In this document: positions 2,398 through 60,627 of the stretch, piece by piece
How positions within the stretch are numbered: the stretch's first letter is position 1
Layout of the letters: each line of letters opens with the position of its first letter
Assembly: GCF_001194135.2 (NCBI RefSeq)
Contig: NC_068982.1
Span: 109,102,177-109,166,176 of the forward strand
Reading direction: 5' to 3'
Source of the DNA: Octopus bimaculoides
Taxonomy: Eukaryota
Length of the DNA: 64,000 nucleotides
Program-made: the position numbers and the translations under genes
The notes under the pieces: model-generated
Told to the model about the DNA's origin: nothing
The model's database searches: none
What the model saw: only the letters and a program-made list of their open reading frames with translations

Positions 2398-4034
2398 TTC
2401 AGCTCACAAAATGACCCATCTGTTTGTGTTGTATAGCAATAATAGTAACTGATGATACTTTCATTCTCTGTGTATCTTTTTTACATTTTTGTGGGCAGGA
2501 CAAACAGAGAATATGACATACTGCCAGTTATGTTAATGCATCAAGTATATATTTCTATTAGTATTTACCTTTCATCTTTTTGGTGTCAATAAAATAAGTA
2601 CCAGTCAAGTATAGGTGCCCCATTTAGAAATCAATTTTGAGATAATTATACTAAATATATCATGCCCTGAATGATGGAACGAGGAGAATATGGAAGTTGT
2701 AGGTATTATAACTAAGTAAGCTTCTTAATTTATGTAGCTGTGTTTGGTCATGTGTTGGGCCATAATTTATTTCTGGTTACTTATTGTTCTGCAACTCCTG
2801 GTTAGTTTTTCCCCAAGATGTGTACATCCTGGTTTTTAGGATAAGCATACCATATCCTTTTGTGCTGTAAGGGGCAACAAGAATGGTTGTTATCAGGAAG
2901 ACCATCTAACCATAAATCTCTCCTCCTCAAAATCCCATGTGGCTTTTGAGGAAGGGCTGATGTAAAGATAATGATGTGACTATCTTGTCTCCCTAGATAT
3001 TAAGGATAAGACAGTTCAAAATATACTTTCTTTTATCAAGATGGTAGAATGTGATTTAGGGAAATTTTGACTACTATTTCTTGCAAGTCAAGTGAATACA
3101 AAAGAAGCAAATTTTTTTTAAGGGGAGTGTTCTGTGGGGAGTGTTGACTTATTTGTTGATTGTAATCTTAGTGGTGATTGTATATTTATATTAGTGGTCA
3201 CTGTATATTTATATTAATGTTATCCCAGCAAATATAAGGAAAATCTAAAGTGTGCAGTGTTATATGAAACATTCCTTAAAAATAATAAGCTACTGAGAAA
3301 AGTTAAACTTAAGAAAGAACAAGCATACTTCAACTTTCTCTGTTTTGAAAAGTAATATCACACATTAAGTGACTTGATTGTAAAGTGATACTTATTAAAA
3401 TATATGTATTACAATCTAAAGTGAAATTCCTTAAAATATTAATTTAAACACTTTACACTGTGTCAAAGTAAATTTTGGTTTTGCCTACTATAACATCTAA
3501 TTTTTTTTCTTTTTGGCATGAAAACTATATTGATTTATTTTGAGATGCTGAGTGGTAATAATAATAAGCTTGGGGCTAATTAGAAATAGTGCTAATTAAA
3601 ATGATTATATCTAATTAATAGTAATGTTAAGCACTACACTTGATGATGATGATGCTTAGTATTTTCCTAGAAAAAAAAATTAAAACATTCTATCAAAACC
3701 TCAATCTAAACAGTAAGACATGACGTAAGTAAAATCATTGTAAACAATGCCCCTTTGTAAGAAGTTTGAAATATTTAAATGTTTTTTTATAATGCCTTAC
3801 TAACTTTAAATTCTATCTTTTTCTCTGGCCTATGAAAAGCCTCACACCAATAAAAGAACATTTAATAGGAGGAATTTTTAGTTTTTTCAAAATCAGGAAA
3901 TGGAAGAACTCTTTGCTTTCTTGAGATACAATCTTTGATGATCAGCTTATTTATTATATATTGTTAAATCTATATTACTAGTAAGTTATTAATATTTATA
4001 TTTGTTTTTCATTTTCAGAGGCAGTTTTTTGACA

Positions 4035-4065
4035 ATGTGGCCATGGAAGAAGGAAAAACCACCAG
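4035..4065 (+). CDS. ATP8B: Candidate N-terminal coding exon 1a (MWPWKKEKPP-E); exon 4019-4065
   Basis: Strong acceptor tttgtttttcattttcag ends at 4018. ATG at 4035 has A at -3. The phase-1 donor CAG|gtatat matches the phase of exon 31847. The resulting short N-terminus resembles short ATP8B isoforms. Confidence 0.65.
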
Positions 4066-9674: not shown

Positions 9675-10016
9675 GAAGGTTTGGAGGTGATGTACAGGAA
9701 TTATAAATTAGAAAAAAAATTAAGGTACTCAGAAATCTGGATGGTTGTACATTAACAGATTTTTATTAATATGTCACATCTTTTATAAATCATATAAAAG
9801 ATGTGACATATTNNNNNNNNNNNNNNNNNNNNNNNNNNNNNNNNNNNNNNNNNNNNNNNNNNNNNNNNNNNNNNNNNNNNNNNNNNNNNNNNNNNNNNNN
9901 NNNNNNNNNNNNNNNNNNNNNNNNNNNNNNNNNNNNNNNNNNNNNNNNNNNNNNNNNNNNNNNNNNNNNNNNNNNNNNNNNNNNNNNNNNNNNNNNNNNN
10001 ATATATATATAATTTA

Positions 10017-14307: not shown

Positions 14308-14356
14308 ATGCCACGCATTTCATCATCAGCCAGAGTTCACATTGGTGATGGGGAAG
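14308..14356 (+). CDS. ATP8B: Candidate alternative N-terminal coding exon 1b (MPRISSSARVHIGDGE-E); exon 14301-14356
   Basis: Acceptor ttttgatctcag ends at 14300. ATG at 14308 has A at -3. The consensus phase-1 donor AAG|gtaagc is in frame with exon 31847. No homology support is visible. Confidence 0.45.
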
Positions 14357-14995: not shown

Positions 14996-15039
14996 NNNNN
15001 NNNNNCACACACACACATACACACAAGCATGTTTATGTG

Positions 15040-21929: not shown

Positions 21930-24900
21930 CTACAGCTGGATGCTCTTCCTAATGCCGACCACTCCCAGAGTGTAGTGGGTGCTTTTATGTGTCACCGGCA
22001 TGAGGGCCAGTCAGGTGGTACTGGCAATGACCACGCTCAAAAGGTCTTTTTTATGTGCCACCTGCATGGGAGCCAGTCCGGCTGCACTGGCAACAACCAT
22101 GCTTGAATGTTGTTTTTCTCGTGTCAACAGCACATGTGTCAGTAAGGCGACGCTGGAAACGATCACGCTCAAATGGTACTTTTACATGCCACTGGTCCGT
22201 GAGCCAGTCAGTAGCCCTGGCAACGATCATGCTCAGATGGTGCTTTTAACGTTCAACCTGCATGAGCGCCAATCAAGTGGTACTGTCATCAGCCATGTCA
22301 GTGATTTTGATTTCACTTGCCTCAACAGGTCTTCGCAAGCAGAGTTTACTGTCCAATGAAGTAAGGGTACTCATAAGAGGGCTGGTTATACACCACTGGC
22401 ATAGGCCACAGGTTATGGTCTAACTTGGCTTGTTGGGTCTTCTAAGCACAGCATATCTCCAAAGCTCTCAGTCACTAGTCATTACCTTGGTGAGGCCCAA
22501 TGTTCGAAGGTCATGCTTCACCACCTCATCCCAGGTCTTCCTGGGTCTACCTCTTCTACAGGTTCCCTCAACTGCTAGGGTATGACACTTTATCACACAG
22601 CTGTCCTCATCCATTCACAACACCTCACCATACAAGTGCAGTCATTTCTCTTGCANNNNNNNNNNNNNNNNNNNNNNNNNNNNNNNNNNNNNNNNNNNNN
22701 NNNNNNNNNNNNNNNNNNNNNNNNNNNNNNNNNNNNNNNNNNNNNNNNNNNNNNNNNNNNNNNNNNNNNNNNNNNNNNNNNNNNNNNNNNNNNNNNNNNN
22801 NNNNNNNNNNNNNNNNNNNNNNNNNNNNNNNNNNNNNNNNNNNNNNNNNNNNNNNNNNNNNNNNNNNNNNNNNNNNNNNNNNNNNNNNNNNNNNNNNNNN
22901 NNNNNNNNNNNNNNNNNNNNNNNNNNNNNNNNNNNNNNNNNNNNNNNNNNNNNNNNNNNNNNNNNNNNNNNNNNNNNNNNNNNNNNNNNNNNNNNNNNNN
23001 NNNNNNNNNNNNNNNNNNNNNNNNNNNNNNNNNNNNNNNNNNNNNNNNNNNNNNNNNNNNNNNNNNNNNNNNNNNNNNNNNNNNNNNNNNNNNNNNNNNN
23101 NNNNNNNNNNNNNNNNNNNNNNNNNNNNNNNNNNNNNNNNNNNNNNNNNNNNNNNNNNNNNNNNNNNNNNNNNNNNNNNNNNNNNNNNNNNNNNNNNNNN
23201 NNNNNNNNNNNNNNNNNNNNNNNNNNNNNNNNNNNNNNNNNNNNNNNGTGTCCATAGCTTACACTGGGTACATCTTATAGAGTTTCTACCTACACCTTTT
23301 CTACAGATCAAGCAGGGCCATCTACCTGAAGGGATTTGTGGTTTGTCAGCCTTCCTACTTATTAAGATTTTGGTTTTAGCTAGGTTGACTCTAAGGCCCT
23401 TCAATTCTAATCCTTGCTTCCACACCTGAAACTTCTCCTCTAGTTCTGGTAGTGACTCAGCAATTAGTGCAAGGTCATCAGCATAGAGGAGCTCCCAGGG
23501 GCATCCTGTCTTGAATTCCTCTGTTATTGCTTGGAGGACTATGATGAATAAGAGGGTGGTGAGGACTGATCCTTGGTGGACCCCTACCCCTACCCAGAAT
23601 TCTTCATTGTACTCGTTGCCAACCCTCACCTTACTGACAGCATCCCTGTATATGGCTTGCACAGCTCTCACTAACCATTCAACTATCCCTAGTTTCTTCA
23701 TCGACCACCAGATAAGGGATCAGGGGACCCTGTCAAAGGCTTTCTCCATGTCAACGAAAGCCAGGTACAGAGGTTTATCTTTGGCTAGGTATTTCTCCTG
23801 CAGCTGTCTTACCAGAGGCACGAACCAAAACTGCATCTCATCTTGACTGACTCTCTCCCTAATTAGTTGGGCTATGACCCTCTCCGTAACCTTCATTACC
23901 TCAGCCAACAACTTGATACCTCTGTAATTGTATCTAAAGCATCACCTTCACCTTTGTAGCAGTTGACTATGGTGCTGCTATACCAGTCATTGGTTATGAC
24001 TCCTTCATGTATCACCTGGTTGACTATATGGGTGATTAGGCTATAGCTGACACCGCTAGATATTTTGAGCATCTCTGCTGTGATTCCTGATGGGCTGGGG
24101 GGCTTTCCCTGTCTTCATACCCTTAATTACTTTATCTACCAAGGTACTCTCAATTTCGATAGCTGGTCCCTCTGTTGGGTCGGCATTTGGCAGACTCTCT
24201 TTCTCCCATTCATTCTCTTTATTTAGCAACCTTTCATAGTGGAGTTCTATACTTAGGAGATGAGGAATTATGTACATTATTTACATTATTTACATTTGAT
24301 GGATATTTGTCATCTTGTTGTTAGCAAAAAATAAGATGAGGACAAATATCCTTCTAATGTAAATAATGTAAATAATGTACTTTCATAGTGTCGTCTCCAA
24401 ACCTCTCTCTTTGAGACCTTGTTTAATGCAAGTGAGCCATCATCCATGTGGACACATTTCTCTCCTACGATATCACGATTCTATCTCACACACTGTCTTG
24501 CAACACGAAATACCTCAAGTCTTTGGTCCTCACAGTGCAGAACATTGGCAAATTTTTTCTCATCTGCCTCCTCGCTGGCTAAACAAACCTGTCTCCTAGC
24601 TTCCCTTCCGGCAGTCTGATGCAATTCCTTGCTACCACCATTCTTCCAGTCCTTCCAAGCCTGTTTTTTTCCCCCAATGGCCCTGTCAACAATATTGTTC
24701 CACCACCCTGTTACCTTGGGTCAAAAGGGAACTTTGCACCATCCACAGATCCGGTCAGTGGCCCTCAGCAGGTTGTTCCATAGAAACCTCCAGTTGTCTT
24801 CCACATCATGTGATGCTATATCCCCCTCTATTTCGTCAAAGGCTTCGAGTATTAGGTCTCTAAATCTCTGTCCATTTGCAGGATCCTTAAGCTTCCAGAC

Positions 24901-25820: not shown

Positions 25821-25863
25821 NNNNNNNNNNGTAGGCGTACCGCGAAATAGCAGAATTAGAAAA

Positions 25864-31500: not shown

Positions 31501-31846
31501 ACATTTGAGGAAATTTATCATCAAACTTCAAGATAGAATCCCTGCAAATTTAATTAGCATGTAATAATTTTCGAATATACAACTTACTAACACACATTAC
31601 ATATACTACTCACATAGTCACCATACAGTTCACTCTATATACCCCACCCCCTCCTCATCTACATAATTTGAAATTGAAAATATATACATGTGTTTTATTT
31701 AAATCTCTTGGCACCAAGATGCTCTGTTAACATCTCTGCAGTTTCGGTTGGTTTTCTTGTGTTATTTATATATGTGTTCATTATATACTTTTGATTTATT
31801 TCAGTTTTGGTTAAAAATAAATGACTTGTAATTTGTTTTTTTATAG

Positions 31847-31905
31847 AACTTGAACGTCGAATTAAAGTCAACAATGCTGAATATAACCTCCAGTTTGGAT
31901 ATGCC
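31847..31905 (+). CDS. ATP8B: P4-ATPase exon (E)LERRIKVNNAEYNLQFGYA
   Basis: tttttttatag acceptor, GCC|gtaagt donor, 59 nt, phase 1->0; matches the ATP8B ERxVKANDREYNxxFxYA motif. Confidence 0.93.
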
Positions 31906-33170: not shown

Positions 33171-35095
33171 CATGAAATTTGCATTGTTTCATATATTTTT
33201 GCTTAAGTTTAAGATCAATACTTGTTCAATGCTAATTTTTATTTTTGATACATCCCATTTTACTTGTATTGATACACCTGCTCATGTATATGATCACATA
33301 CATATACATGTGTACAAATGTTTCACAGCTATCACATTGATATATTTTCATGTTTATTTTTGTCTCCTTTATGCTGTGTACTATGTAAGTTAAAAATATA
33401 CTCATTTTTATCTGCATATATGCCCTCCCTTGGTATGTGTTATTTCATTACTTACTTTCTTTCTTACCATCACCAATTTTTATTGCTACCATCTCTCTCT
33501 CTCTCTCCTCTCTCTCTCTCCTCTCTCTCCTCTCTCNNNNNNNNNNNNNNNNNNNNNNNNNNNNNNNNNNNNNNNNNNNNNNNNNNNNNNNNNNNNNNNN
33601 NNNNNNNNNNNNNNNNNNNNNNNNNNNNNNNNNNNNNNNNNNNNNNNNNNNNNNNNNNNNNNNNNNNNNNNNNNNNNNNNNNNNNNNNNNNNNNNNNNNN
33701 NNNNNNNNNNNNNNNNNNNNNNNNNNNNNNNNNNNNNNNNNNNNNNNNNNNNNNNNNNNNNNNNNNNNNNNNNNNNNNNNNNNNNNNNNNNNNNNNNNNN
33801 NNNNNNNNNNNNNNNNNNNNNNNNNNNNNNNNNNNNNNNNNNNNNNNNNNNNNNNNNNNNNNNNNNNNNNNNNNNNNNNNNNNNNNNNNNNNNNACTTTC
33901 TTTCTTACCATCACCAATTTTTATTGCTACCATCTCTCTCTCTCTCTCCTCTCTCTCTCTCCTCTCTCTCTCTCTTTCTCTCCCTCTCTCACATTACTCC
34001 TTTATATCAATGTCCATCACTTTCTCTTTCACATTAGCCTCTCACTTCCATTACTCCTTTTTTCATTACTTCCTTTTCCTTATTAATCATGCTGTCTTCC
34101 ATCATCACATAACTCTTGCTTTTTTCTCTTCCGTCTTCTTACCAACAGTCAACATGTAGCTATCACACTCTTGCTCCAATCACTCAAGTTTCCCATTCTT
34201 ACTCTTTCCTGGCACCCTCTCACTATAGTTCTTTTATTTTCATCATTCTCTCTTCTATCATCCTTCAGTCATGTTTTGAAGACAGTGTAAGGTAGAGATG
34301 ACATGGCAACCTCTCTAGTGCTTGTGTCATAATAAAATGTATCCAGTTCACTCTGTAAACAAACAAAAACTACAAGGTACAGAGAACTCTTAGTCATATA
34401 GAGGCAAGACAACATTTCTAATGCTAAGGCTACAATAAAATGCCTATAGTATCTTGATAATACTAAAACTTTAGGGATGTTTGTGTGTTACTGAAATATC
34501 TCAGAAAGAGTACAAATTTTTGTGACATTTGGACCTCTATTTAAATGATTAAACACAATTTTTGTTATTTCTTGATGCAAAAATACATGGCTTCTGTGAA
34601 GTCAACACACATACACACATACAAAATGCACACACATATAATGAATGTCATTGTGTGTCAATTAATACAAACGCATGTCCGCTATCTGTGACATATACAC
34701 ACACAGTCTTCGTTCTCTCTAAGAAAAAAAAAAAAACGTTGACTTTTTGATGTACGCAATATTTTAATCATTTAGAAATATTTTTCACTGAATGTGATTT
34801 CATCATCTGGAGTTTGTTAATTTCCTTAAAAAAACTTTTATTTATTTACTTTTGTTTTAAAGTGAAAGAGAGGAGAAAGTGAAAGATGTATGTACGTATA
34901 TATGAAATGGATGTGTGTATGTATGTGAGAGAGAGAGAGAAAAAGAGAGTGAGTGAAGGGGTGTGTTGTCATGCATATGTGCATACATTAATACATATGT
35001 GTACATCATTTTTGTATGTATGTGTGCATGTGTGTGAGAGAGAGTGTGAGTGAATGTGTGTGTTCTCATGTAAGTGGCACACTCTCTTTCTCTCT

Positions 35096-36866: not shown

Positions 36867-36980
36867 ACTAACTACATCAGTACATCCAAGTACAATGTTT
36901 TAACATTTCTTCCCAAGAACTTATTTGAGCAGTTCCGGCGACTTGCCAATTCTTATTTTCTAATTCTCCTTATCCTACAG
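36867..36980 (+). CDS. ATP8B: P4-ATPase exon [38 protein letters not shown] (includes TM1)
   Basis: tttcag acceptor, CAG|gtatgt donor, 114 nt; carries the conserved TSKY...FLPxNLFEQF.R.AN.YF motif. Confidence 0.97.
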
Positions 36981-37634
36981 GTATGTAAACAAATACTGTA
37001 CTTCACCTTTGTGCAAGGAGCTGAAAGTGATTTACTTACTCTGTTGTATGTATTTGCGTGTGTCTTTGAATTAACAATATTGATCACGGTTGGCAAGAAG
37101 GATTGCTGATTTATCATTATTGAATGTATATATATGTGGTATATGCTATTTAAAAAAAGTGTTATGATTTGGCATGTCTTCTTGGTAATAATAATAAGGA
37201 TAAGTATAAAAAAAAGAAAAAGAAAAAAGAAAAAAATAGAGTTGGAATGTAAGTAGTTGCTAGGGATTGACTAATGCAGAAATTCCATTCTGAAATATAC
37301 CAGGCAAGTTATGGTGAAATTGATTTGACTTATTAAGGACAATGACATACAAAAATGCTACAATTTTATAATAGTAAACCTTTTAGTGTTTTTATGTTAA
37401 TTATATAAACTTACTACTACAGCTGAAGACCCTGTTGTTTCAAGTTTTTTGGATATACTACCTACTAACAAAATTACAATGAGCTATGTTAAATATCAAA
37501 TTTGTCTTAGAGAATTGTTATTAAAACTGACCTCATCATTAGAATGTGTCCAACCCATGCCAGCATGGAAGATGGATGTTAAATGATAATGATGATGATT
37601 TACAATATTTACATTTATGCTATGTTTCGATCAG

Positions 37635-38115
37635 GTATGCAGGTTTGGTTGTGTGGTTAAAAAGCTTGTGTGATCTTGGATTCAATCTCATTGGGTAGTA
37701 CTTTGGTCAAGTGTTTTCTACTATAATCCCAGGCCCACCAAAGCCTTGTGAATGAATTTAGTGGACAGAAACTGAAAAGAAGCCCATTGTGTGTGTGTAT
37801 ATATAGATAGATAGGTATACTGTGTGTGTGCATGTGTGTGTGTATGCATGTGTTTGTACCTTTGTGCTAGATACCACATGATAGTTGTAAATGTACACTG
37901 TTATCATATAAGCAAGGTTATTTGATTCTAGTTTTCTGTGAGAAACATATCCGCCTATGGGTAAATATTACTTTGCTTGGAGACAGTTGAGCATTGGCAG
38001 CAAGAAAAGCATCTTGCCATAGAAATATCTGCTTCAACAAATTCCATCTGATCCAAGCAAGTAAGGAAAAGTGACTGTTAAATAATTATTATTATGATGA
38101 TGATGATGATGATGT
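37635..38115 (+). mobile_element. tRNA-derived SINE family A
   Basis: ggttgtgtggttaaaaagcttg...gaaactgaaaagaagccc...(GAT)n. Confidence 0.7.
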
Positions 38116-39630
38116 ACATGGTCCCATACTAGATCCAAACTAGGAACATTCATTTCTAAACTAAGCAAAGTAATTTCATTATTTACTAAGCCAGTGCTGT
38201 GCATGTTCTGGGGGTTTTGTAGATAACAATATTAGTACTGATGGTTTTGGATTATCTACACATCCAGGGTGACTATCAAAGACTGAGTTGATTTTAATGT
38301 AGTATAGATATAGATATTGTAAATATACACTTCAAAGAGGAAGTGAATAGTCTGTACCATTTATATAGTAATGTATAAATTACTACTGAACTGAAGTATT
38401 TTCTGAAGCTAATAAGAGAAAAGCTATTCTTTGAGACACAGTTATGTTACAAATAATGGGTTTCACAATCTTCTTAAGAAAGATCTTCAGTTATTGTGAA
38501 ACGAGATTTGTAGAAAGTTTGAATTGCCTGTCACTTGCTACAGCTTTGTGGGATTTGAATTACATGTTGCCCCAGATGAGAGAGTGTGATGCACAAGACT
38601 GTGTCTGTGCATTCTGTGCAGTGATTATATCTTTGTGCAAGATTATCTTGTTCCCACTGGAGACTGGTTTTGGGTTCTCTATTTATGAGGGCAGTGCAAA
38701 TTTGGAAAGTGGTATTTAGGGTGTATGTCTATGTGCAGAATATTAGGGAGGAACAAAAATGCTATGATTTGGATAGGAATGACTGTTATTTGAGGTGACT
38801 GCAGGTTAAGTTGTTAACATACAAGAGGGAGAGTCTGGGTAATATAAAACAAATCTTGGAGCACACCAGAGTTGATAATGTATGTCAGAAGACTTATAAT
38901 TGTGTTCCGCAATCTGACAGGAAACTTTCCATGTAAGAGATTAAAGACAGATGAATCCTTTAGTTGGGCAGTCAAAACACTTTGAAAATTGTGATTTAGA
39001 ATTGTATAGAAGAAATTGATTACATCCACATTTCAAGGAGCTGATTTTACTTTCTTCATTTTTATATTAGAGGAAAATAGAAGAATGCTAATCAGAAAAT
39101 GCTATTAAAGAAACAAATCTTTGTTTTTTGATTGGCATTTTCTTCTAACTTTTTTTTTTATCTGGCATATCAAAGATATATTCAAATAAGTCAATGTTGG
39201 AGGATAGTGTTGTTGGTACTGGAATAGTTGTTGGATAAATTTACTAGGTTCTAATGCTTTTAGCAATAATAAAACAAGTAGCAGAAGGAAACTATTATAA
39301 AAACTGTGCCTTTAGCATTGTAGGTTTCCCAAATCTCTCTCTCTCTCTGTAGAACCATATGTTTATAGTTAATACAACAATCTCTGTAATCATTCATAGA
39401 CATTATCTTGGAGAGAAGAGTCTTTCTCCTAGATGTTACCACCAATTTTTAAGAGACCATAATTTTTCTATTGGAGGAAAAGGAAAATATTTTTGGTTAA
39501 GAAAGGTCATATTATCTTAGACAATTCAGCAAATCTCCTTAATTAATTTCATAAATTTCTTTAAATAGTTTGAAAATGATAAAGTCATCTGTGATGTAGA
39601 CATTAATAATGGAGTATTTTGTCATAAAAG

Positions 39631-39729
39631 CTGATTCCACAGGTGTCATCTCTGAATCCAATTGCCACATTCATACCATTAGTCACTGTTCTGGGAATCA
39701 GTGCCATTAAAAGTGCTATTGATGACATA
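39631..39729 (+). CDS. ATP8B: TM2 exon, variant A: LIPQVSSLNPIATFIPLVTVLGISAIKSAIDDI
   Basis: 99 nt, phase 0-0, open frame, ATA|gtaagt donor, weak AAG acceptor with an alternative in-frame CAG ending at 39642; homologous to variant B. Confidence 0.82.
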
Positions 39730-41134
39730 GTAAGTGAAATTTGGGTATAATTCATTTCCTGTTACCTTTGGCTGATCCTAAAAGTGCTAAATTCATGTTA
39801 CCTTTGGCTGGTCCCAAAAGTGCTAAATTATTATAATTATTTTCATTATTTATTGTTTTTTTTTTTAGAAGCTAAAGAAATTTGAGTACTTGTAATTTTT
39901 GTTGCAATACTTTGAAAGGAAAAATTAGCCCCTAAAATGTCTTGAATGCAAAATGTCCTTTAAAAACCTTAGGTTTCTTGTCTATGTAAGAATCTGATAT
40001 TAATAATTGACTACTTAATAAGTTGGATTTGGTGCCGAAAGTTTATGATTTCAAACCCTATAATTGACATTGTTATCTGCACATATGTGGCAATTAACAA
40101 TTCCAACTGCCTGTGAGTAAAAATGGTTTCAGATTCACACAATTTAATGGTAACTTGCTGCAAAAGGTCTGTTCAAATAGTTCCCATACAATTTCACTTT
40201 TAACCCTTTAAACCTCTGTATGAAAAATTTATAAGTATTTACTTTTTTGCATTTGAACAAAGTAAAAACGAAATATACTTGTGGGCTTTTCATGCACATT
40301 CACATGTAAATGAAGTACAATAAAAAATTGTGGGAATTGAAACTAGCTCACAAGCTCTGATCAATTGAGTTTGGAATTGTATTAGTGCTTATTCATAAAG
40401 TTTTGTTACCATCAAAAAATTACAGTACACAAATTTCTTTATGTTTGTATTATCTTTAGAATTATCTCGGAAGCATATTTGTAGCCAAGAAAGTTACTTT
40501 ATAGATAGATGATGAATTTTAATTGAATGTTGATTTTTAGCATTGTTCAGTGTCACAAAATTTGGAGAAGGGGTAAACCAATTACTTCTACCCCAGTATT
40601 TGTATGATAATTTCTTTACTAATGTATGGAAGCTGATATAAAAAGCAAAGATGACCATGAAAGTAGAACATAAATTATATTACTAAACATTACACAACAC
40701 TTTGTTTGGTACTCTGCTGATTCTACCTTCTTATAACTTTTATTGTATTTATGATAAAAAAATAAAACTTGTTTTCTATGTTCAGCTGAACAAATTTTGG
40801 CTTCAAGTGAATATTTTTTATGCCATATGTAGAATTTCATATGTCTAAGACAGATGTTGTTGTGCAAGATTTGCTAGGGTTTCTATAAAGATCACAAATA
40901 TATTTTGTTATTAAAATTCCTTTCTTGGCTTTGTCTGCACAAGCCTGTAAATTACTCACCAATAGCATTTGGTGATGGCTTTCTGCTGGGTAAGCAGTAT
41001 TTATTGCTTTATCCAAGAGTGTAGCAGACTGAAGCATTTACTTGAGATACATCATTTCAACCTGTGAGCTAGAAGATTTATATCGTTAATGTTTCATGTG
41101 CAACTTATTGCATATTGTAATAATAAATTTTTTG

Positions 41135-41315
41135 TGTAGGGATAAGTCGATTAAATTGACGCCAGCACTCATCTGGTACTTATTTTATTGACCCAGAACA
41201 GATGAAAGGCAAAGACAACTCCAGCAGAATTTGAACTCAAGATGTAAAGATGGATGAAATGCTGCTAAGCATTTTTCCCAGTGTGCTAACAATTCTGCCA
41301 GCTTCCTGCCTTACT
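41135..41315 (-). mobile_element. tRNA-derived SINE family B
   Basis: Minus strand tggcagaattgttagc (A box) ... gagttcaaattc (B box) ... ctttgcctttcatc...aataagtaccag. Other copies at about 30933-31150(-), 46040-46150(+), 48425-48535(-) and 51715-51880(-). Confidence 0.7.
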
Positions 41316-41536
41316 TGCACTATGAATATTGATGTATGTCATATATAATACTCCAACAGCTGTATTTAATTTATCACTGTAACATTTGGCTAAGAATAGA
41401 CTTCTATGATAATTCTAGATATGTCTCTGCGCAAGAAACATATCTTTAATTGGTTTATATATAAAACTTTGCTGGGATTGTTCTTTACAATTTTCTGCAA
41501 CTGCAAAATGCACAAAAGACACACATGCACACATGC

Positions 41537-41575
<39 letters not shown>

Positions 41576-42259
41576 TTATTTTATTAAATGTGGGAAATAT
41601 ATTCATATATAAGGTTTTATGTATTTTATGAGGGAAATGTATTTTCTTTTGAAATGTTGTTCACTTGATGAATTATTTTTATTTATTCATTTATTTATTT
41701 TTTTTCATTTAATTAATGTAAAATATAAAAATAAATGTAGCTTATTTGGTATGGTATTATGCTTATGATCTAATTTCAGAAAAAAAAAATCTCTTTAATC
41801 AGATATTATTAGCATGTATTTGAGACAGATAGGGCAAACAGGTTCACTGATGGGACCTAACCCATTTAAATCATCTATCTATTACTCATTGGGCAACTAT
41901 GCTACTGATTGCGTTGCAGATAATGTGTAGTGAAACTAATAAGGCAGTTGTTTGATAAGTGATATGCATGGCTTGACTCATCAATGTACCTACTCATCTT
42001 TTCTGTCTCAAATTATTTGTTATTATGTTTAATATCATTGTACATTGAAAATATTAAAACAGTTACTTGAATATCTAAATGTCTGATAAAAAGAAATGAA
42101 GGATGAGATTGATAGTTTGAAAAATCTTAGAAATATTTGTAGCTTTATAGATCCAATAAAAATATTGAGTCTTATTTCCTGCTATTTTTGTTGAGCTTAT
42201 AGATCCATCTGTTTTTAATTGATGGTAATATTTTATGATTAAAGAATATCACGACTCAT

Positions 42260-42306
<47 letters not shown>

Positions 42307-44359
42307 NNNNNNNNNNGAAATAATCATAGAAGGTACAGTTTTTACCCCATAAAGACATAATTGGCAAAGGACTTCTTTTTTTTTTTTTCTGTGTGTGTAA
42401 GATTTTATCTTGTGGTCTGGAGCAATAATGATTTAGTAGTAAATATTAAATATTTTAGACTGCTGGTCATATCTTCCTTAAGCAGGGTGCCTAACATTTC
42501 TTGCTGCTGCTTAAAAAGTTTTTGTTTTTTCACCACCATAGACACACACTTTGGTGAAGAGGTACTTAACATTAAGTAGTTAATTTCTTTATAACCACCA
42601 AGTAAACAAATATAAAATATAAAATCTTGTCCTCCAACAAAATCTATTATTACTTATTTTGGTGTGGTTGTTGGGGAGTGGCAATATGTAAATGAGTAAG
42701 ACATCATTTTAGACACAAAACTATCAGATCATATCCTATCATTAGTGCTAAGCTGTGTTTTGGGCCAAGTAAATAAACAGTTCTGATGGCTGTAGAACCA
42801 TTAACAATTTTGTACATTTACCTTGTGGTTCTTTCATCCCCACCTTAACTTGTATAGTGCAATTTATACTTTGCTAACAAGGTTAGAATAATACCAAAAA
42901 ATGTATGTTCTTCCCTGAATTTGTTGGGTAAATGAGAGGCACATTATTCATTGACTAACTTTTTTTCTTCACCATGTATTTATTTTTTGTTAGCTTTTAA
43001 AATGCTCTTTGCATTAATAAGTTACCAGTGGCTTGTCTAAAACAAAAATTAGCTAGATGACAGTTCAATGATAGATCAGCAAACCCATATTTTGTGTGTA
43101 GTTTGATATTTTGCTGTTGTAACACAGAACTATTTTATAAAATCCTTTTTGGTTTTTTTTAAGTATATCTGTTTCTGTTGCTAACATAATATCTGTCAGA
43201 ATTTTAAGGGAAGAACCTGACAGTAATTTCTCAAATAAACAATGAAGTTCAAATTTTTTAGAGGAAGAGAAAACGAAAGTTGTGAATATGATACATTATT
43301 TTCAAGTCTAATAAGAAGGAAATAAAATAATTACAATTGTGATTCACTGATTCACCTTGCTGGGAGATATGCACATCCATAGAACAGAATGTTGCTACTT
43401 GTAATGATACTTTATGCAAACAAAAAGCTCTAATACTTATACAAACACTTCAAAATCAACAGTGGTGAATATGTTGATTTCTCATAAACCAATCGACACT
43501 ATCATTTATGGGTTTGGAAAGTTTGTACAACTGTTGGATACTTTTTTGTATAAATAAAATGTATAACACTACATTCAGATGCATTGAACTCTTTTTGTGT
43601 GTATTGTTTTAACCTAAGATTATCATTATATACTTGTAATTATAGAAAGTTGTTGTATGTATCTCTTTTTATGTGCCCATGTTGATAGGCACTGGTTGTC
43701 ATGGATTTCCTTGCCAAAGTCAATTTTCTTGAGAATGATATGACAATGGTTTCCCATTGCCTTCTGCCAGTTTATTTATAGTTTACTTTGTTAGTCTCTT
43801 GCTCTACCAAGCTTACCCTTGAGACATAGGGCTTATTTAAATCATAGGCAGGAATGGGGCACTAGTTCATGTGACATATGGGCTTGTTTACACACTGCAT
43901 GTTTGCAAAAAATATAAAAACTAAAAATCCATCAGTGAACAACATTATTGAATGGACAAAGCCTTTAACACATTTACTGTCAAATGCATGGAAACAAGAA
44001 ATATTACATGTAGAAAATTGCACTTAAACATTTTCTAAGTGTCATATGTTATAGTGATATCTTTGAAAGCCTGTTCATAACAAACAAGATTTATTATCTT
44101 TTGAAATGAATTCTTAGAGAATCTACTAAGTTTTATTAAATATATGACTTCATATCATTGACAATAAATTAATGATAAATTCTATCCATATCAAAGGTTT
44201 CATGCCTTTGGCAGTGCATTTGTTAAAATTAACTCTGTCCAATTTGTGACTGTTCTATCATTACTATGGTGCTAAAATACATTAAAAAAAATGGTTTATC
44301 TTTATTTATGCAATCTCTTTTCTCTTTTATTATGATTTGTTTTGGTTTTTGCTTGCCAG

Positions 44360-44458
44360 TTCATCCCCCCGATCTCGTCTTTGACCCCTCTAACTACTCT
44401 GATACCAATGGTGGCGGTACTTGCCATTACTGCATTAAAGGATTTGGTAGATGACGTT
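44360..44458 (+). CDS. ATP8B: TM2 exon, variant B: FIPPISSLTPLTTLIPMVAVLAITALKDLVDDV
   Basis: 99 nt, phase 0-0, tttggtttttgcttgccag acceptor, GTT|gtaagt donor; canonical KDxxDD end of TM2. Confidence 0.93.
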
Positions 44459-45401
44459 GTAAGTTTTGGTTCTTTCTACTATGGCCACAATGGGTCAGTA
44501 TGTGAATTATTAATGTACTGCATTGTTTACACACACATGCACACACACCATAATTTTTTTTATCATTGCTTTGATTCTGCTATATATGTTCCTATTTTAT
44601 TTTCTACTTTCCTTTTCCTTTCATTTTGCATTCTTTCTATCATAGTCTTCTACTTTCTTTCCCTATCTTTTATTATGTCTTTCTTCCTATCTTTTGCTTT
44701 CTCTTTCACTCTTGTATTCTCTCTGTTTACCTGTCTTTCCTCTTTTTTCCACTCTTTCTTGTTTCCAATCTGCCTTCTTCCTCTTCTTCTCCTTTCTCAC
44801 TCTTCTCTCTCTTTGTATCTTTTTATTTCTTTCTCACAGCTTCTCTCTTTTTTTCTTGTTTCTTTTTTCTTTTTGTTTTTGCATGCATCCTGTACTTTGT
44901 TCTCCTGAATCCCATGCATTTCCTCTTTTTTGGTATTTTACATTCCTTATTTTCTATCATCTCTCCCTCTATTTCTTCCCTCTTTGTTTTTATCTCCCCA
45001 CTCTCTTTATTTTACTGCACCTTCTTTCAATCTTCTACAATATTTTAACCACCACCACTAACTACCATGTACATAAACAGGTAAGTTTGGTTTTTTCTTT
45101 GTTCTACATAGATACAACTGCCTTACTGTAGTTATACAATTCTACAATCCTATGATCTGACTCCATATCTCCATATGGCTTTACTGATATTTTTGGCAAA
45201 ATTTATAGGAATTACCAAAATTCTGTTTTATATGATTCCTTCATAACATAGCACTGTTGCAAATTGGCTTGGTAAACAGTATACTTCCTGCATTTAGACT
45301 GTAAATTTGACACCTAAATCTCTGTTTTCTTAACATGGATGTCTTGTTAGACAAGAATTGCCTGTCTTGAGTGCTGTCTGTTACAATTTAGTATATACTT
45401 T

Positions 45402-49377: not shown

Positions 49378-49512
49378 CAACGCCATCGAAGTGACAACCA
49401 GGTTAATAATCGTATTTCCTTTGTGCTTCGTGATGGTCAAATGGTTGAAGAAAAATGGCACAAAGTTGTTGTTGGTGATATCATTCGAATGGAAAACAAC
49501 CAGTTTGTGGCA
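49378..49512 (+). CDS. ATP8B: P4-ATPase exon QRHRSDNQVNNRISFVLRDGQMVEEKWHKVVVGDIIRMENNQFVA (A domain)
   Basis: Poly-T-ag acceptor, GCA|gtaagc donor, 135 nt; RH.SD..VNNR and W..V.VGDI motifs. Confidence 0.97.
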
Positions 49513-52476: not shown

Positions 52477-52547
52477 GCTGATCTTTATCTATTGTCTACG
52501 AGTGAACCAAACAGTTTATGCTATATTGAAACTGCTGAGCTTGATGG
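52477..52547 (+). CDS. ATP8B: P4-ATPase exon [23 protein letters not shown](G)
   Basis: tttctttgaacag acceptor, GG|gtgagt donor, 71 nt, phase 0->2. Confidence 0.97.
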
Positions 52548-53225: not shown

Positions 53226-53342
53226 TTATATATATATATATATATATCGTCGTCGTCGTCATGAGCCTGGTGTTGCCATCCGGTTTCACCAGTCCTCAGT
53301 CAAATCGTCCNNNNNNNNNNTCTGTCTATCTGTTGATATATA

Positions 53343-58800: not shown

Positions 58801-60544
58801 ATGGCACTAGCTGTGATATTTTGTCTCAGATAAACTTCTCAATGCAACTTTCAAGTCCCTATATTGATTTCATTTTAGCCTGGCCAGCTTTTGCACAAAT
58901 CAGTGAATGTCTTGTTTGCTAATACTCTATATTGGAATTCAGCTTAGGTCAGAATGTTTGAAAGTGTTTACCATTGAGGGGATCAGTTGAGGTTGAAATA
59001 CCTTGTCTAATAATCTGATGATAACATTCTGAGACAACCCTGTGTACTTTAAAACACAAGTCTCTTTAAGAAGTTTCCCTGAGACTGAGTATCATAGCTA
59101 ATGATGGTTCTACATTTGTATATAAATATAATACTCATCATTAATTTAATTTAATGCTGTTTCAAGTACATGTGTGTATTACACACGCGCGCGCACACAC
59201 ACACACACAAACACACACACATCTTCTGGGTGAAAAAGATGGAATGGTCATGGCTAAAATGCCTTTGAACATATGTCTGCTGGATTAGAGTTGAACTGGT
59301 ACTTGGACAACAAAATAACTAAGATTATTAAGCAAATGAGGTTATTGAGAGAACAATTAAATCTGAAAAACCAATCTGAATATGCTAGAAGGACTCAGTA
59401 TAAATCAGCTTACATTAAATGCCTAAATACTTTTTCTGCAGCCATAAAACAGTAAAAGTTTTGTTACATTTCCTTTGTTACTGGAAGCTTTTTATTGTCT
59501 TATTAAAGACATAACTACATAGTTTTTGTCATAAGTGTTTTATGGCTGGATACTCAGTTTCTTTCTGTTGTTAACCATTCATCTCATGTGTGCACAGTCG
59601 CAAATGTTCAGTCATCTGAGTGAAGCAAACATTGCAAAATTTAACTTTTAAGCTTAGTATTTCACTATTGTTGCATGTATCTATAAGTGGTTGGTTTATT
59701 AAACATAGTAGTCCAATATTGATGTATATATCTATAAGTGGTTTTTGTTTACGGAATTCTCTTTCCAATAATATTATATACATTTTTCTGTTTTACAGTC
59801 ATTCTTGTTTAGACCAAGGTTGACATTGATTGAGCTAGCCTGTGATGAAAGATTTCCCAGCAGTAGTTTTACCCATCTTTGTACATAACTAAGGCTATGT
59901 TACCCAATGTTAAAACAACGGGAGAGATTTAGGCTCTGTTTCTTACTGGTGGAGTCACCAATATATAGCCTCTTCTATTGGCTTGTGATTGAGCTGTATG
60001 TACTTCTACATAATGCCTAACTATAGCCTAAAGATTGGCCCATCAAAGAAAAAATGTATTTTCCACTAACATAGCACAACACCAAAAATGGAGTACACAC
60101 CATTATATCCTTCATTAGTTAGGATGCTCTCCTCTTTCCTATAAGTCAAGCTGTAATTGAGACTGCTGGGTATGATACAGAACAATTGTCCAAACTGAAT
60201 GTTCTTTATATTTAGATGAAGGACCACTTAAAAGAAAAAAATATACAGAAACTTGAGCTGACACATTAGTACTTGTTAAATACAGTCTATAGGATACATT
60301 AGGATTTAGTATTCATTGCGCATGATATTGATATGCTAACTATTGACTGTAGTCATGGAATCATTATTATATTGTGTATAGTTTTACTACATTACATAAA
60401 TACTGCTATTTTTATTCTAGCTCTATACTAACAACGCCGTTTTATGACTAATGCACTTACACTTAGGTAATAGTTTAATAATGTACTTCATTTACTACTT
60501 TATTTTTGGCAATCTTTTATTTATTTATTTATTTTTATATTCAG

Positions 60545-60627
60545 GGAAACAAATTTGAAAGTGCGGCAAGCTCTTATTGAGACTGCTGAAATGGGTGATG
60601 ATCTAGAGCAGTTGTCCAAATTGAATG
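60545..60627 (+). CDS. ATP8B: P4-ATPase exon (G)ETNLKVRQALIETAEMGDDLEQLSKLN(G); completes the DGET phosphatase motif
   Basis: ttcag acceptor, G|gtaaat donor, 83 nt, phase 2->1. Confidence 0.96.

Follow-up and report, generated by a model that had tools for sequence, protein, structure and literature searches.

An ATP8B-type P4-ATPase (lipid flippase) gene of Octopus bimaculoides contains two homologous 99-nucleotide (nt) exons, here called A and B, each of which encodes the end of transmembrane helix 1 (TM1), the loop behind it and transmembrane helix 2 (TM2), and the two are used as alternatives between the same pair of constitutive exons. Judging from its sequence, the DNA analysed (the window, a stretch of 64,000 nt) is the 5' third of this gene, on the plus strand. 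The explanation that best accounts for the evidence as a whole, and that we consider quite probable, is an ancient exon duplication whose two copies are in regulated alternative use, with leaky exclusion and a predicted difference between the resulting isoforms. The elements on which the argument turns are the following.

36867 to 36980, plus strand: constitutive exon with most of TM1 (38 residues, ending in LILLILQ), whose donor (ctacag/gtatgt) is common to A and B.
39631 to 39729, plus strand: alternative exon A (TM1 end, loop, TM2), regulated and sample-specific, supported by the sequence, RNA contigs, RefSeq isoform X3, and Argonauta and gastropod orthologues.
42307 to 42316, no strand: assembly gap in the A-B intron, adjoining an (AT)n repeat, seen in the sequence.
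44360 to 44458, plus strand: alternative exon B (TM1 end, loop, TM2), the default exon, supported by the sequence, RNA contigs and RefSeq isoforms X1 and X2.
49378 to 49512, plus strand: constitutive exon QRHRSD...NNQFVA (exon C), whose acceptor is common to A and B.

Exon A (LIPQVSSLNPIATFIPLVTVLGISAIKSAIDDI) lies between ...cataaaag and gtaagtga, and exon B (FIPPISSLTPLTTLIPMVAVLAITALKDLVDDV) between ...gcttgccag and gtaagttt; both are stop-free, of phase 0-0 and bounded by AG/GTAAGT sites, and they share their splice partners, with the TM1>A and TM1>B junctions both leaving from donor 36980. An earlier note, made from the letters of this DNA alone, had placed two such 99-nt, phase 0-0 exons with GTAAGT donors between the TM1 and QRHRSD exons and had described the flanking introns as dissimilar. 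The coordinates and splice sites were confirmed, and the 100-nt flanks of the two exons proved to be 31-32% identical, which is the random level. The encoded segments are identical at 17 of 33 residues and differ at the other 16, and 56 of 99 nucleotides match, with 20, 27 and 9 of 33 identical at codon positions 1, 2 and 3, respectively; conservation is thus seen at second positions, and third positions match no better than random (i.e., they are saturated). This codon-position pattern, together with the random flanks, cannot be put down to chance and indicates an old duplication in which both copies have been under protein-level selection. A third TM2-like exon was not found within the 64-kb window. 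The assembly gap comes after an (AT)n microsatellite midway along the A-B intron and makes only the length of that intron (4630 nt as given) uncertain; the suspicion that it might hide a frame problem was rejected, since it touches no exon or frame.

Annotation and RNA both speak for use of the two exons as alternatives, as had been suspected from the sequence: equal-length isoforms carry one or the other, and TM1>A and TM1>B junctions are present in RNA contigs. In RefSeq, the O. bimaculoides isoforms X1 and X2 are B-only and isoform X3 (XP_014790380.1) is A-only, all of 1236 amino acids (aa); the isoform set of O. sinensis is the same, with XP_036356467.1 as its A-only X3, and an A+B isoform is annotated for neither species. 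Two truncated O. bimaculoides models, X7 (beginning MTYNAIEV) and X6 (MTFNAIEV), correspond to the +1 frame read across the A>C and the B>C junction, respectively, so the annotators' transcript evidence included the 39729>49378 junction. The predicted junction peptides are SAIDDIQR for A>C, DLVDDVQR for B>C and SAIDDIFIPPISSLTPLTTLIPMVAVLAITALK for A>B.

The RNA evidence consists of assembled contigs of public sequencing runs (labelled with X-numbers), of which short stretches around each exon were examined. A single unbranched TM1>B contig, with exon A absent, is found in runs X3, X11, X12, X13, X14 and X39. In run X25, the TM1 contig, of depth 17.9, forks into a TM1>B branch (depth 12.7) and a TM1>A branch (depth 8.4), and in run X26 the corresponding depths are 4.7 and 4.6. 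Run X25 and runs X11-X14 and X39 come from the same study, so that exon A, absent from some of these runs and present in another, is used in a strongly sample-specific manner, ranging from nil to about 40-50% of gene depth (runs X25 and X26 being the users). Exon A is also indexed in runs X29, X30, X31 and X35, without usable contigs there. In run X26, moreover, the exon A contig passes unbranched, at a depth of 5.55, across the junction 39729>44360 and covers the initial 30 nt of exon B, i.e., double inclusion. Exon A is therefore spliced in and an A+B form exists, and with regard to a rule of exactly one exon per mRNA, A-only and B-only isoforms and B-only contigs, the latter counted in seven runs, are seen alongside the A>B junction of run X26.

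The pair is also old. A search of other molluscs, as the earlier note had proposed, found intact 99-nt exons with AG/GT sites in Argonauta hians, where TM1, A (LIPQVSSLSPIFTIIPFFVVIGISAVKSAIDDI), B and C follow in the same order, and in the snails Bulinus and Candidula, where an A-like and then a B-like exon lie between TM1 and C; the A-B intron of Bulinus measures 1.35 kb, and the locus of O. sinensis spans 180 kb. Cephalopod A exons share a mean of 21.8 of 33 residues with gastropod A exons vs. 17.0 with gastropod B exons, and cephalopod B exons share 21.6 with gastropod B vs. 17.8 with gastropod A. Likewise, in a neighbour-joining tree (built from 33 columns only and without support values), cephalopod and gastropod A exons group as a single clade, outside which the first exons of bivalves (of the ...SSLPWYTT... 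type) fall. As A resembles A and B resembles B across the two classes, the duplication is older than the cephalopod-gastropod split. Between Bulinus and Candidula, exon A is identical at 32 of 33 residues and at all 33 second codon positions, with 19 of 33 third positions identical, a pattern of substitution by which exon A is under strong purifying selection. Both copies have been kept across species under such selection in the Argonauta, Bulinus and Candidula comparisons.

A separate observation concerns exon B, which matches its Argonauta counterpart (L004:26247-26345) at 28 of 33 third positions, vs. 21 of 33 in exon A. This synonymous conservation may reflect exonic splicing signals or some other constraint acting on the nucleotides themselves.

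Beyond the octopods, equal-length A-only and B-only RefSeq isoforms are annotated in the gastropods Littorina, Biomphalaria, Physella, Haliotis, Patella and Pomacea. Six bivalves possess equal-length isoforms, each with one of two different TM2 exons, and two TM2 alternatives each are found in Saccostrea, Mytilus, Mercenaria and Mya. RefSeq isoforms of the zebra mussel Dreissena carry three alternative TM2 exons, and those of the nemertean Lineus longissimus carry four. A tick, Lingula and Tubulanus show one exon, as do vertebrates, and a gene model of the nematode Plectus contains two TM2 copies in tandem. Going by these gene models and sequences, the TM2 exon seems to have been duplicated in tandem repeatedly. 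All four combinations (the two single-exon forms, both exons and neither) are annotated in Pomacea and Crassostrea virginica.

Deposited models from Bulinus, Nucella, Littorina, Pinctada and Argonauta are split, truncated or read through both TM2 exons. Such split or double-TM2 mollusc gene models are probably annotation errors caused by the duplicated exon.

On the segment that is exchanged, the earlier note was again right: the TM1 end, loop and TM2 contain the published selectivity positions. Exon B aligns to the TM1-end/TM2 segment of human ATP8B1 over 33 residues, with TA(I/L)KDLVDDV common to both. In ATP8B1, TM1 and TM2 make up the headgroup cavity and open and close the groove by which the lipid enters, and they have been proposed to signal occlusion to the actuator domain (PMC10657443). 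Selectivity determinants have been mapped to Dnf1 G230, A231, T254 and D258, which correspond to ATP8A2 Q95, Q96, A119 and E123 (PMC4937031). The first of these (Dnf1 G230) aligns to the constant Q that ends the TM1 exon, and the other three align to residues 1, 24 and 28 of the alternative exons, which read L/S/S in octopus A and F/T/D in octopus B. Residue 24 is S in all nine A-clade exons (9/9), and residue 28 of the A clade varies: octopods have S, caenogastropods and heterobranchs E, Patella and Haliotis D. At residues 24 and 28, the B exons mostly have T and D. From these alignments, a difference between A and B in substrate preference or rate is plausible.

Several points nonetheless weigh against the interpretation developed here. 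RefSeq isoforms are computed models, in which alternative variants need transcript support. Among the contigs, A>B is the sole assembled continuation of exon A and represents all of the A-containing depth in run X26, and the exon A contig of run X25 ends at the end of the exon, with no assembled continuation. Of the junctions that the earlier note had listed for checking, 36980>39631, 36980>44360 and 39729>44360 were recovered in contigs, but the A>C junction (39729>49378) was not seen directly in reads or contigs, and four runs gave no contigs over exon C; the missing contigs were probably long ones lost to a human-similarity filter. The raw-read runs X40-X42 barely express the gene, with 0-3 reads per exon when about 6% of each run was read. 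The differences at the selectivity positions are conservative (T to S) or vary between lineages (D, E or S), and the analysis identified no trans-acting factor or cis-acting motif. What points to an A-only form is the RefSeq models, together with an evolutionary argument.

The X26 contig, which passes from A straight into B without branching and at a depth (5.55) matching that of TM1>A, is what would be seen if exon A were a cassette exon placed before B, whose inclusion added 33 residues in frame (another TM2) and inactivated the protein, either as a "poison" exon that does not act through nonsense-mediated decay (NMD) or as noise. Both-exon gene models fit the same idea, and these are known from Argonauta, Littorina (GenBank), Pomacea (X1/X2), C. 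virginica (X1) and Dreissena. However, A-only isoforms are annotated in RefSeq for both O. bimaculoides and O. sinensis, as well as for at least six gastropods, and neither Octopus species has an annotated A+B isoform. A poison exon would have no need of a TM2-like sequence, whereas exon A keeps the pattern IP..SSL.P..T.IP....V....A.K...DD, and its protein is conserved at 32 of 33 residues between the two snails while third positions drift. The topology of P4-ATPases is such that an extra helix puts the actuator domain on the wrong side of the membrane, and the insertion would misplace that domain accordingly. We therefore judge a cassette exon to be unlikely, and favour A and B as alternatives to one another.

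How the choice between the two is made is best approached through the splice signals. Exon B has a long, strong polypyrimidine tract, and the acceptor region of exon A is weak and A-rich (aataatggagtattttgtcataaaag). Three intronic blocks around the exons are conserved between Octopus and Argonauta.

39589 to 39630, plus strand: intronic block that includes the weak acceptor region of A, a candidate regulatory element, conserved between Octopus and Argonauta.
44459 to 44513, plus strand: intronic block of about 55 nt just 3' of exon B, conserved between Octopus and Argonauta.
45174 to 45323, plus strand: conserved non-coding element between exons B and C, lying 0.7 kb 3' of exon B, found by blastn and alignment.

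Around exon A, the weak acceptor region is conserved together with about 40 nt upstream of that region and about 25 nt downstream of the exon (39561-39757 matches Argonauta L004:21210-21408 by blastn at 77% over 200 nt), and around exon B, 44325-44513 matches L004:26215-26402 at 81.7%. The third element matches the collinear L004:27011-27161 at 74.5% over 153 nt (E=1e-21) and may be a splicing regulator.

Another intronic stretch, 37402-37852 (core 37678-37789), stands out by a very high RNA-contig depth and also matches the Argonauta A-B intron non-collinearly, at 78.6% (L004:24028-24138). It is probably a transposable element or other dispersed repeat.

The earlier note had argued that an active mechanism must enforce exclusivity, and this argument was not supported: the A>B junction occurs in run X26, forms with both exons or neither are annotated in Pomacea, C. 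virginica and others, and no steric, U12, NMD or conserved RNA-pairing device was found. Specifically, the A-B intron is about 4.6 kb long, all sites are of the GT-AG U2 type, and 99 nt keeps the frame. Strict mutual exclusivity through competing RNA structures, with a docking site and selectors as in Dscam, 14-3-3 zeta and MRP1, would be in keeping with several of these features, because a preserved frame means that NMD cannot police A and B, the long introns and the GTAAGT donors of both exons exclude steric and U2/U12 mechanisms, and conserved intronic blocks lie by A, by B and 0.7 kb downstream of B. Against it, no conserved RNA pairing was found among the conserved blocks of the two cephalopod genomes compared; the duplex energies among them are within 2.3 standard deviations of shuffled controls, save for one pair that is weak in Argonauta. 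An inverted-repeat scan for docking/selector pairing likewise returned low-complexity matches only, and the exclusivity is demonstrably leaky. Structure-enforced exclusivity is thus more improbable still than a cassette exon. Finally, the notion that exon A is a functionless decaying relic or an assembly artefact of B, to which the assembly gap between the exons, the weak A acceptor and the lack of exon A in most RNA runs might lend some colour, is refuted and has next to no chance of being right, given that 43 of 99 nt differ and yet both exons are open with intact splice sites, that the same pair is syntenic in four other genomes, that exon A is spliced to TM1 in two runs, and that it is under strong purifying selection by its substitution pattern.

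Under the explanation that we prefer, leaky alternative use of an anciently duplicated exon, an ancestral 99-nt exon encoding the last TM1 residues, a short exoplasmic loop and all of TM2 would have been duplicated in tandem before cephalopods and gastropods diverged. A and B would then serve as alternatives between donor 36980 and acceptor 49378, each yielding a 1236-aa flippase, with a difference at 16 of 33 residues of the lipid groove. B, with a strong polypyrimidine tract, would be the default, being the sole form in most samples, and A, with a weak A-rich acceptor that has been kept in Argonauta, would be included in some samples only. Which exon is chosen may depend on tissue-specific RNA-binding proteins acting as activators of A and repressors of B, as for FGFR2 IIIb/IIIc and unc-32. 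With no hard-wired exclusion device, exclusion would be leaky; since nothing bars joint use or joint skipping of the exons, forms with both or neither leak through as by-products. These would be in frame but, having an odd number of helices before the actuator domain, should be non-functional. Finally, the two proper isoforms are predicted to differ in lipid selectivity or kinetics.

FGFR2 IIIb/IIIc is a protein-regulated, mutually exclusive exon pair. Similarly, exon 7a/7b of unc-32 in C. elegans is a protein-regulated pair in which RNA-binding proteins activate one exon and repress the other (PMC4165533). Like both of these, the octopus exons form a frame-preserving pair with a long intron between, and a default and a regulated exon, for which no structural device is needed; unlike them, the octopus pair comes without a regulator or motif, and the likeness is suggested by its anatomy, namely the weak, conserved A acceptor and the conserved flanks. 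A second set of parallels is found among tandem-duplicated exon substitutions in general, which are of ancient origin and over-represented in transmembrane transport proteins, the P-type PMCA pumps among them; about half of all such substitutions are in proteins with transmembrane helices, and ion transport genes are enriched (PMC9741552). As in exon 5a/5b of the SCN alpha genes and in the PMCA family, A and B are adjacent, homologous exons of equal length and phase and of ancient origin (PMC9741552, PMC5740500), they encode transmembrane segments, and one exon per mature protein would be the functional form, with a choice that is probably tissue-specific. In contrast to those systems, the octopus case concerns a P4-ATPase lipid flippase with visibly leaky exclusivity, and the flippase pair is restricted to certain lineages, being present in molluscs and a nemertean, whereas the tick and vertebrates have a single exon.

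The closest functional comparison is with human ATP8B1 (PDB 7PY4, 8OX7 and 7VGH) and with the gate mutants of Dnf1 and Drs2, in that the segment swapped in octopus holds the equivalents of Dnf1 A231, T254 and D258. In vertebrates and yeast, TM2 comes from a single exon or segment, and different specificities are found in separate paralogues or in mutants made in the laboratory, whereas one octopus gene provides two natural versions. The question of novelty, which the earlier note had left unverified, has a divided answer: RefSeq has listed the isoforms since the O. bimaculoides annotation of 2015, but no paper on them was found, and searches of the full-text literature yielded no description of alternative TM2 exons in any P4-ATPase or of the octopus gene. 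This tandem-exon pair is of the textbook substitution type, annotated but apparently undescribed in papers.

The identity of the gene is secured by several lines of evidence. By tblastn, identity is 100% between the exons of the window and the RefSeq proteins of O. bimaculoides that bear the name "phospholipid-transporting ATPase ID", and a few residues differ from the O. sinensis orthologue. The O. bimaculoides proteins identical to the window exons carry the domains PF16209, PF13246, PF00702 and PF16212, and PF16209, the N-terminal P4-ATPase domain, is present in all homologues that are fragments. The closest solved relative by phmmer against the PDB is human ATP8B1 (E=1.5e-58), followed by ATP8A1 (2.6e-51), Drs2, ATP11C and Dnf1, and the gene is therefore assigned to the ATP8B type. 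The full-length RefSeq proteins, retrieved with a query padded by tandem repetition to 1188 aa and with isoforms taken from the cluster listing, possess the DKTGT phosphorylation motif (YIFSDKTGTLTQN) and the TM4 PISL motif (NTVVPISLYVS), whose exons lie outside the window. Seven coding exons of this one plus-strand gene were placed by tblastn with homologues, and two more 5' coding exons were found with the RefSeq N-termini. In addition to the exons given above, the map comprises the following.

4017 to 4064, plus strand: upstream coding exon RGSFLTMWPWKKEKPP, common to isoforms X1-X3, a 100% tblastn match of RefSeq N-termini.
14308 to 14355, plus strand: alternative first coding exon MPRISSSARVHIGDGE of isoform X4, a 100% tblastn match.
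31846 to 31905, plus strand: coding exon ELERRIKVNNAEYNLQFGYA, with its true start 2 nt upstream (split codon) and its end joined to 36867 by RNA contigs.
52477 to 52547, plus strand: next constitutive exon after exon C (24 residues), placed by tblastn.
60545 to 60627, plus strand: next constitutive exon ETNLKVRQALIETAEMGDDLEQLSKLN, placed by tblastn.

The first exons of isoforms X1 (MSERK...) and X2 (MEEEL...) lie outside the window. Six other assembly gaps (9813-10000, 14996-15005, 22656-23247, 25821-25830, 33537-33894 and 53311-53320) fall in none of the mapped exons. A degenerate partial copy of exon 60545-60627 is found 400 nt upstream of it, at 60141-60203; it matches at 20 of 22 and 15 of 16 nt, reads ISQAVIETAGYDTEQLSKLNV, lacks clean splice sites and is absent from the RefSeq isoforms. 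A further tandem exon duplication may have left it behind as a relic.

The debate on how P4-ATPases select their lipid still draws on laboratory chimeras, point mutants and a few cryo-electron microscopy structures. Here, two versions of the debated segment have been kept in one gene for roughly half a billion years, with up to four in relatives. A bolder proposal, which we put forward tentatively as possible but doubtful, is that of an ancient "specificity cassette", widespread among lophotrochozoans, in which spliced TM2 exon variants (two in cephalopods, gastropods and most bivalves, three in Dreissena and four in Lineus) would confer tissue-specific headgroup selectivity from a single gene; if so, it would be the first case of a naturally swapped gate among P4-ATPases. 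In terms of genome annotation, the pair would explain the broken or double-TM2 models of Bulinus, Nucella, Littorina, Pinctada and Argonauta. Should the isoforms prove alike in substrate and kinetics, the strong conservation of exon A would still need explaining. If they differ, they would represent natural, folding-competent chimeras with which to examine the two-gate model of an entry and an exit gate, and the lipid asymmetry of the membrane would be tunable, tissue by tissue, through splicing.

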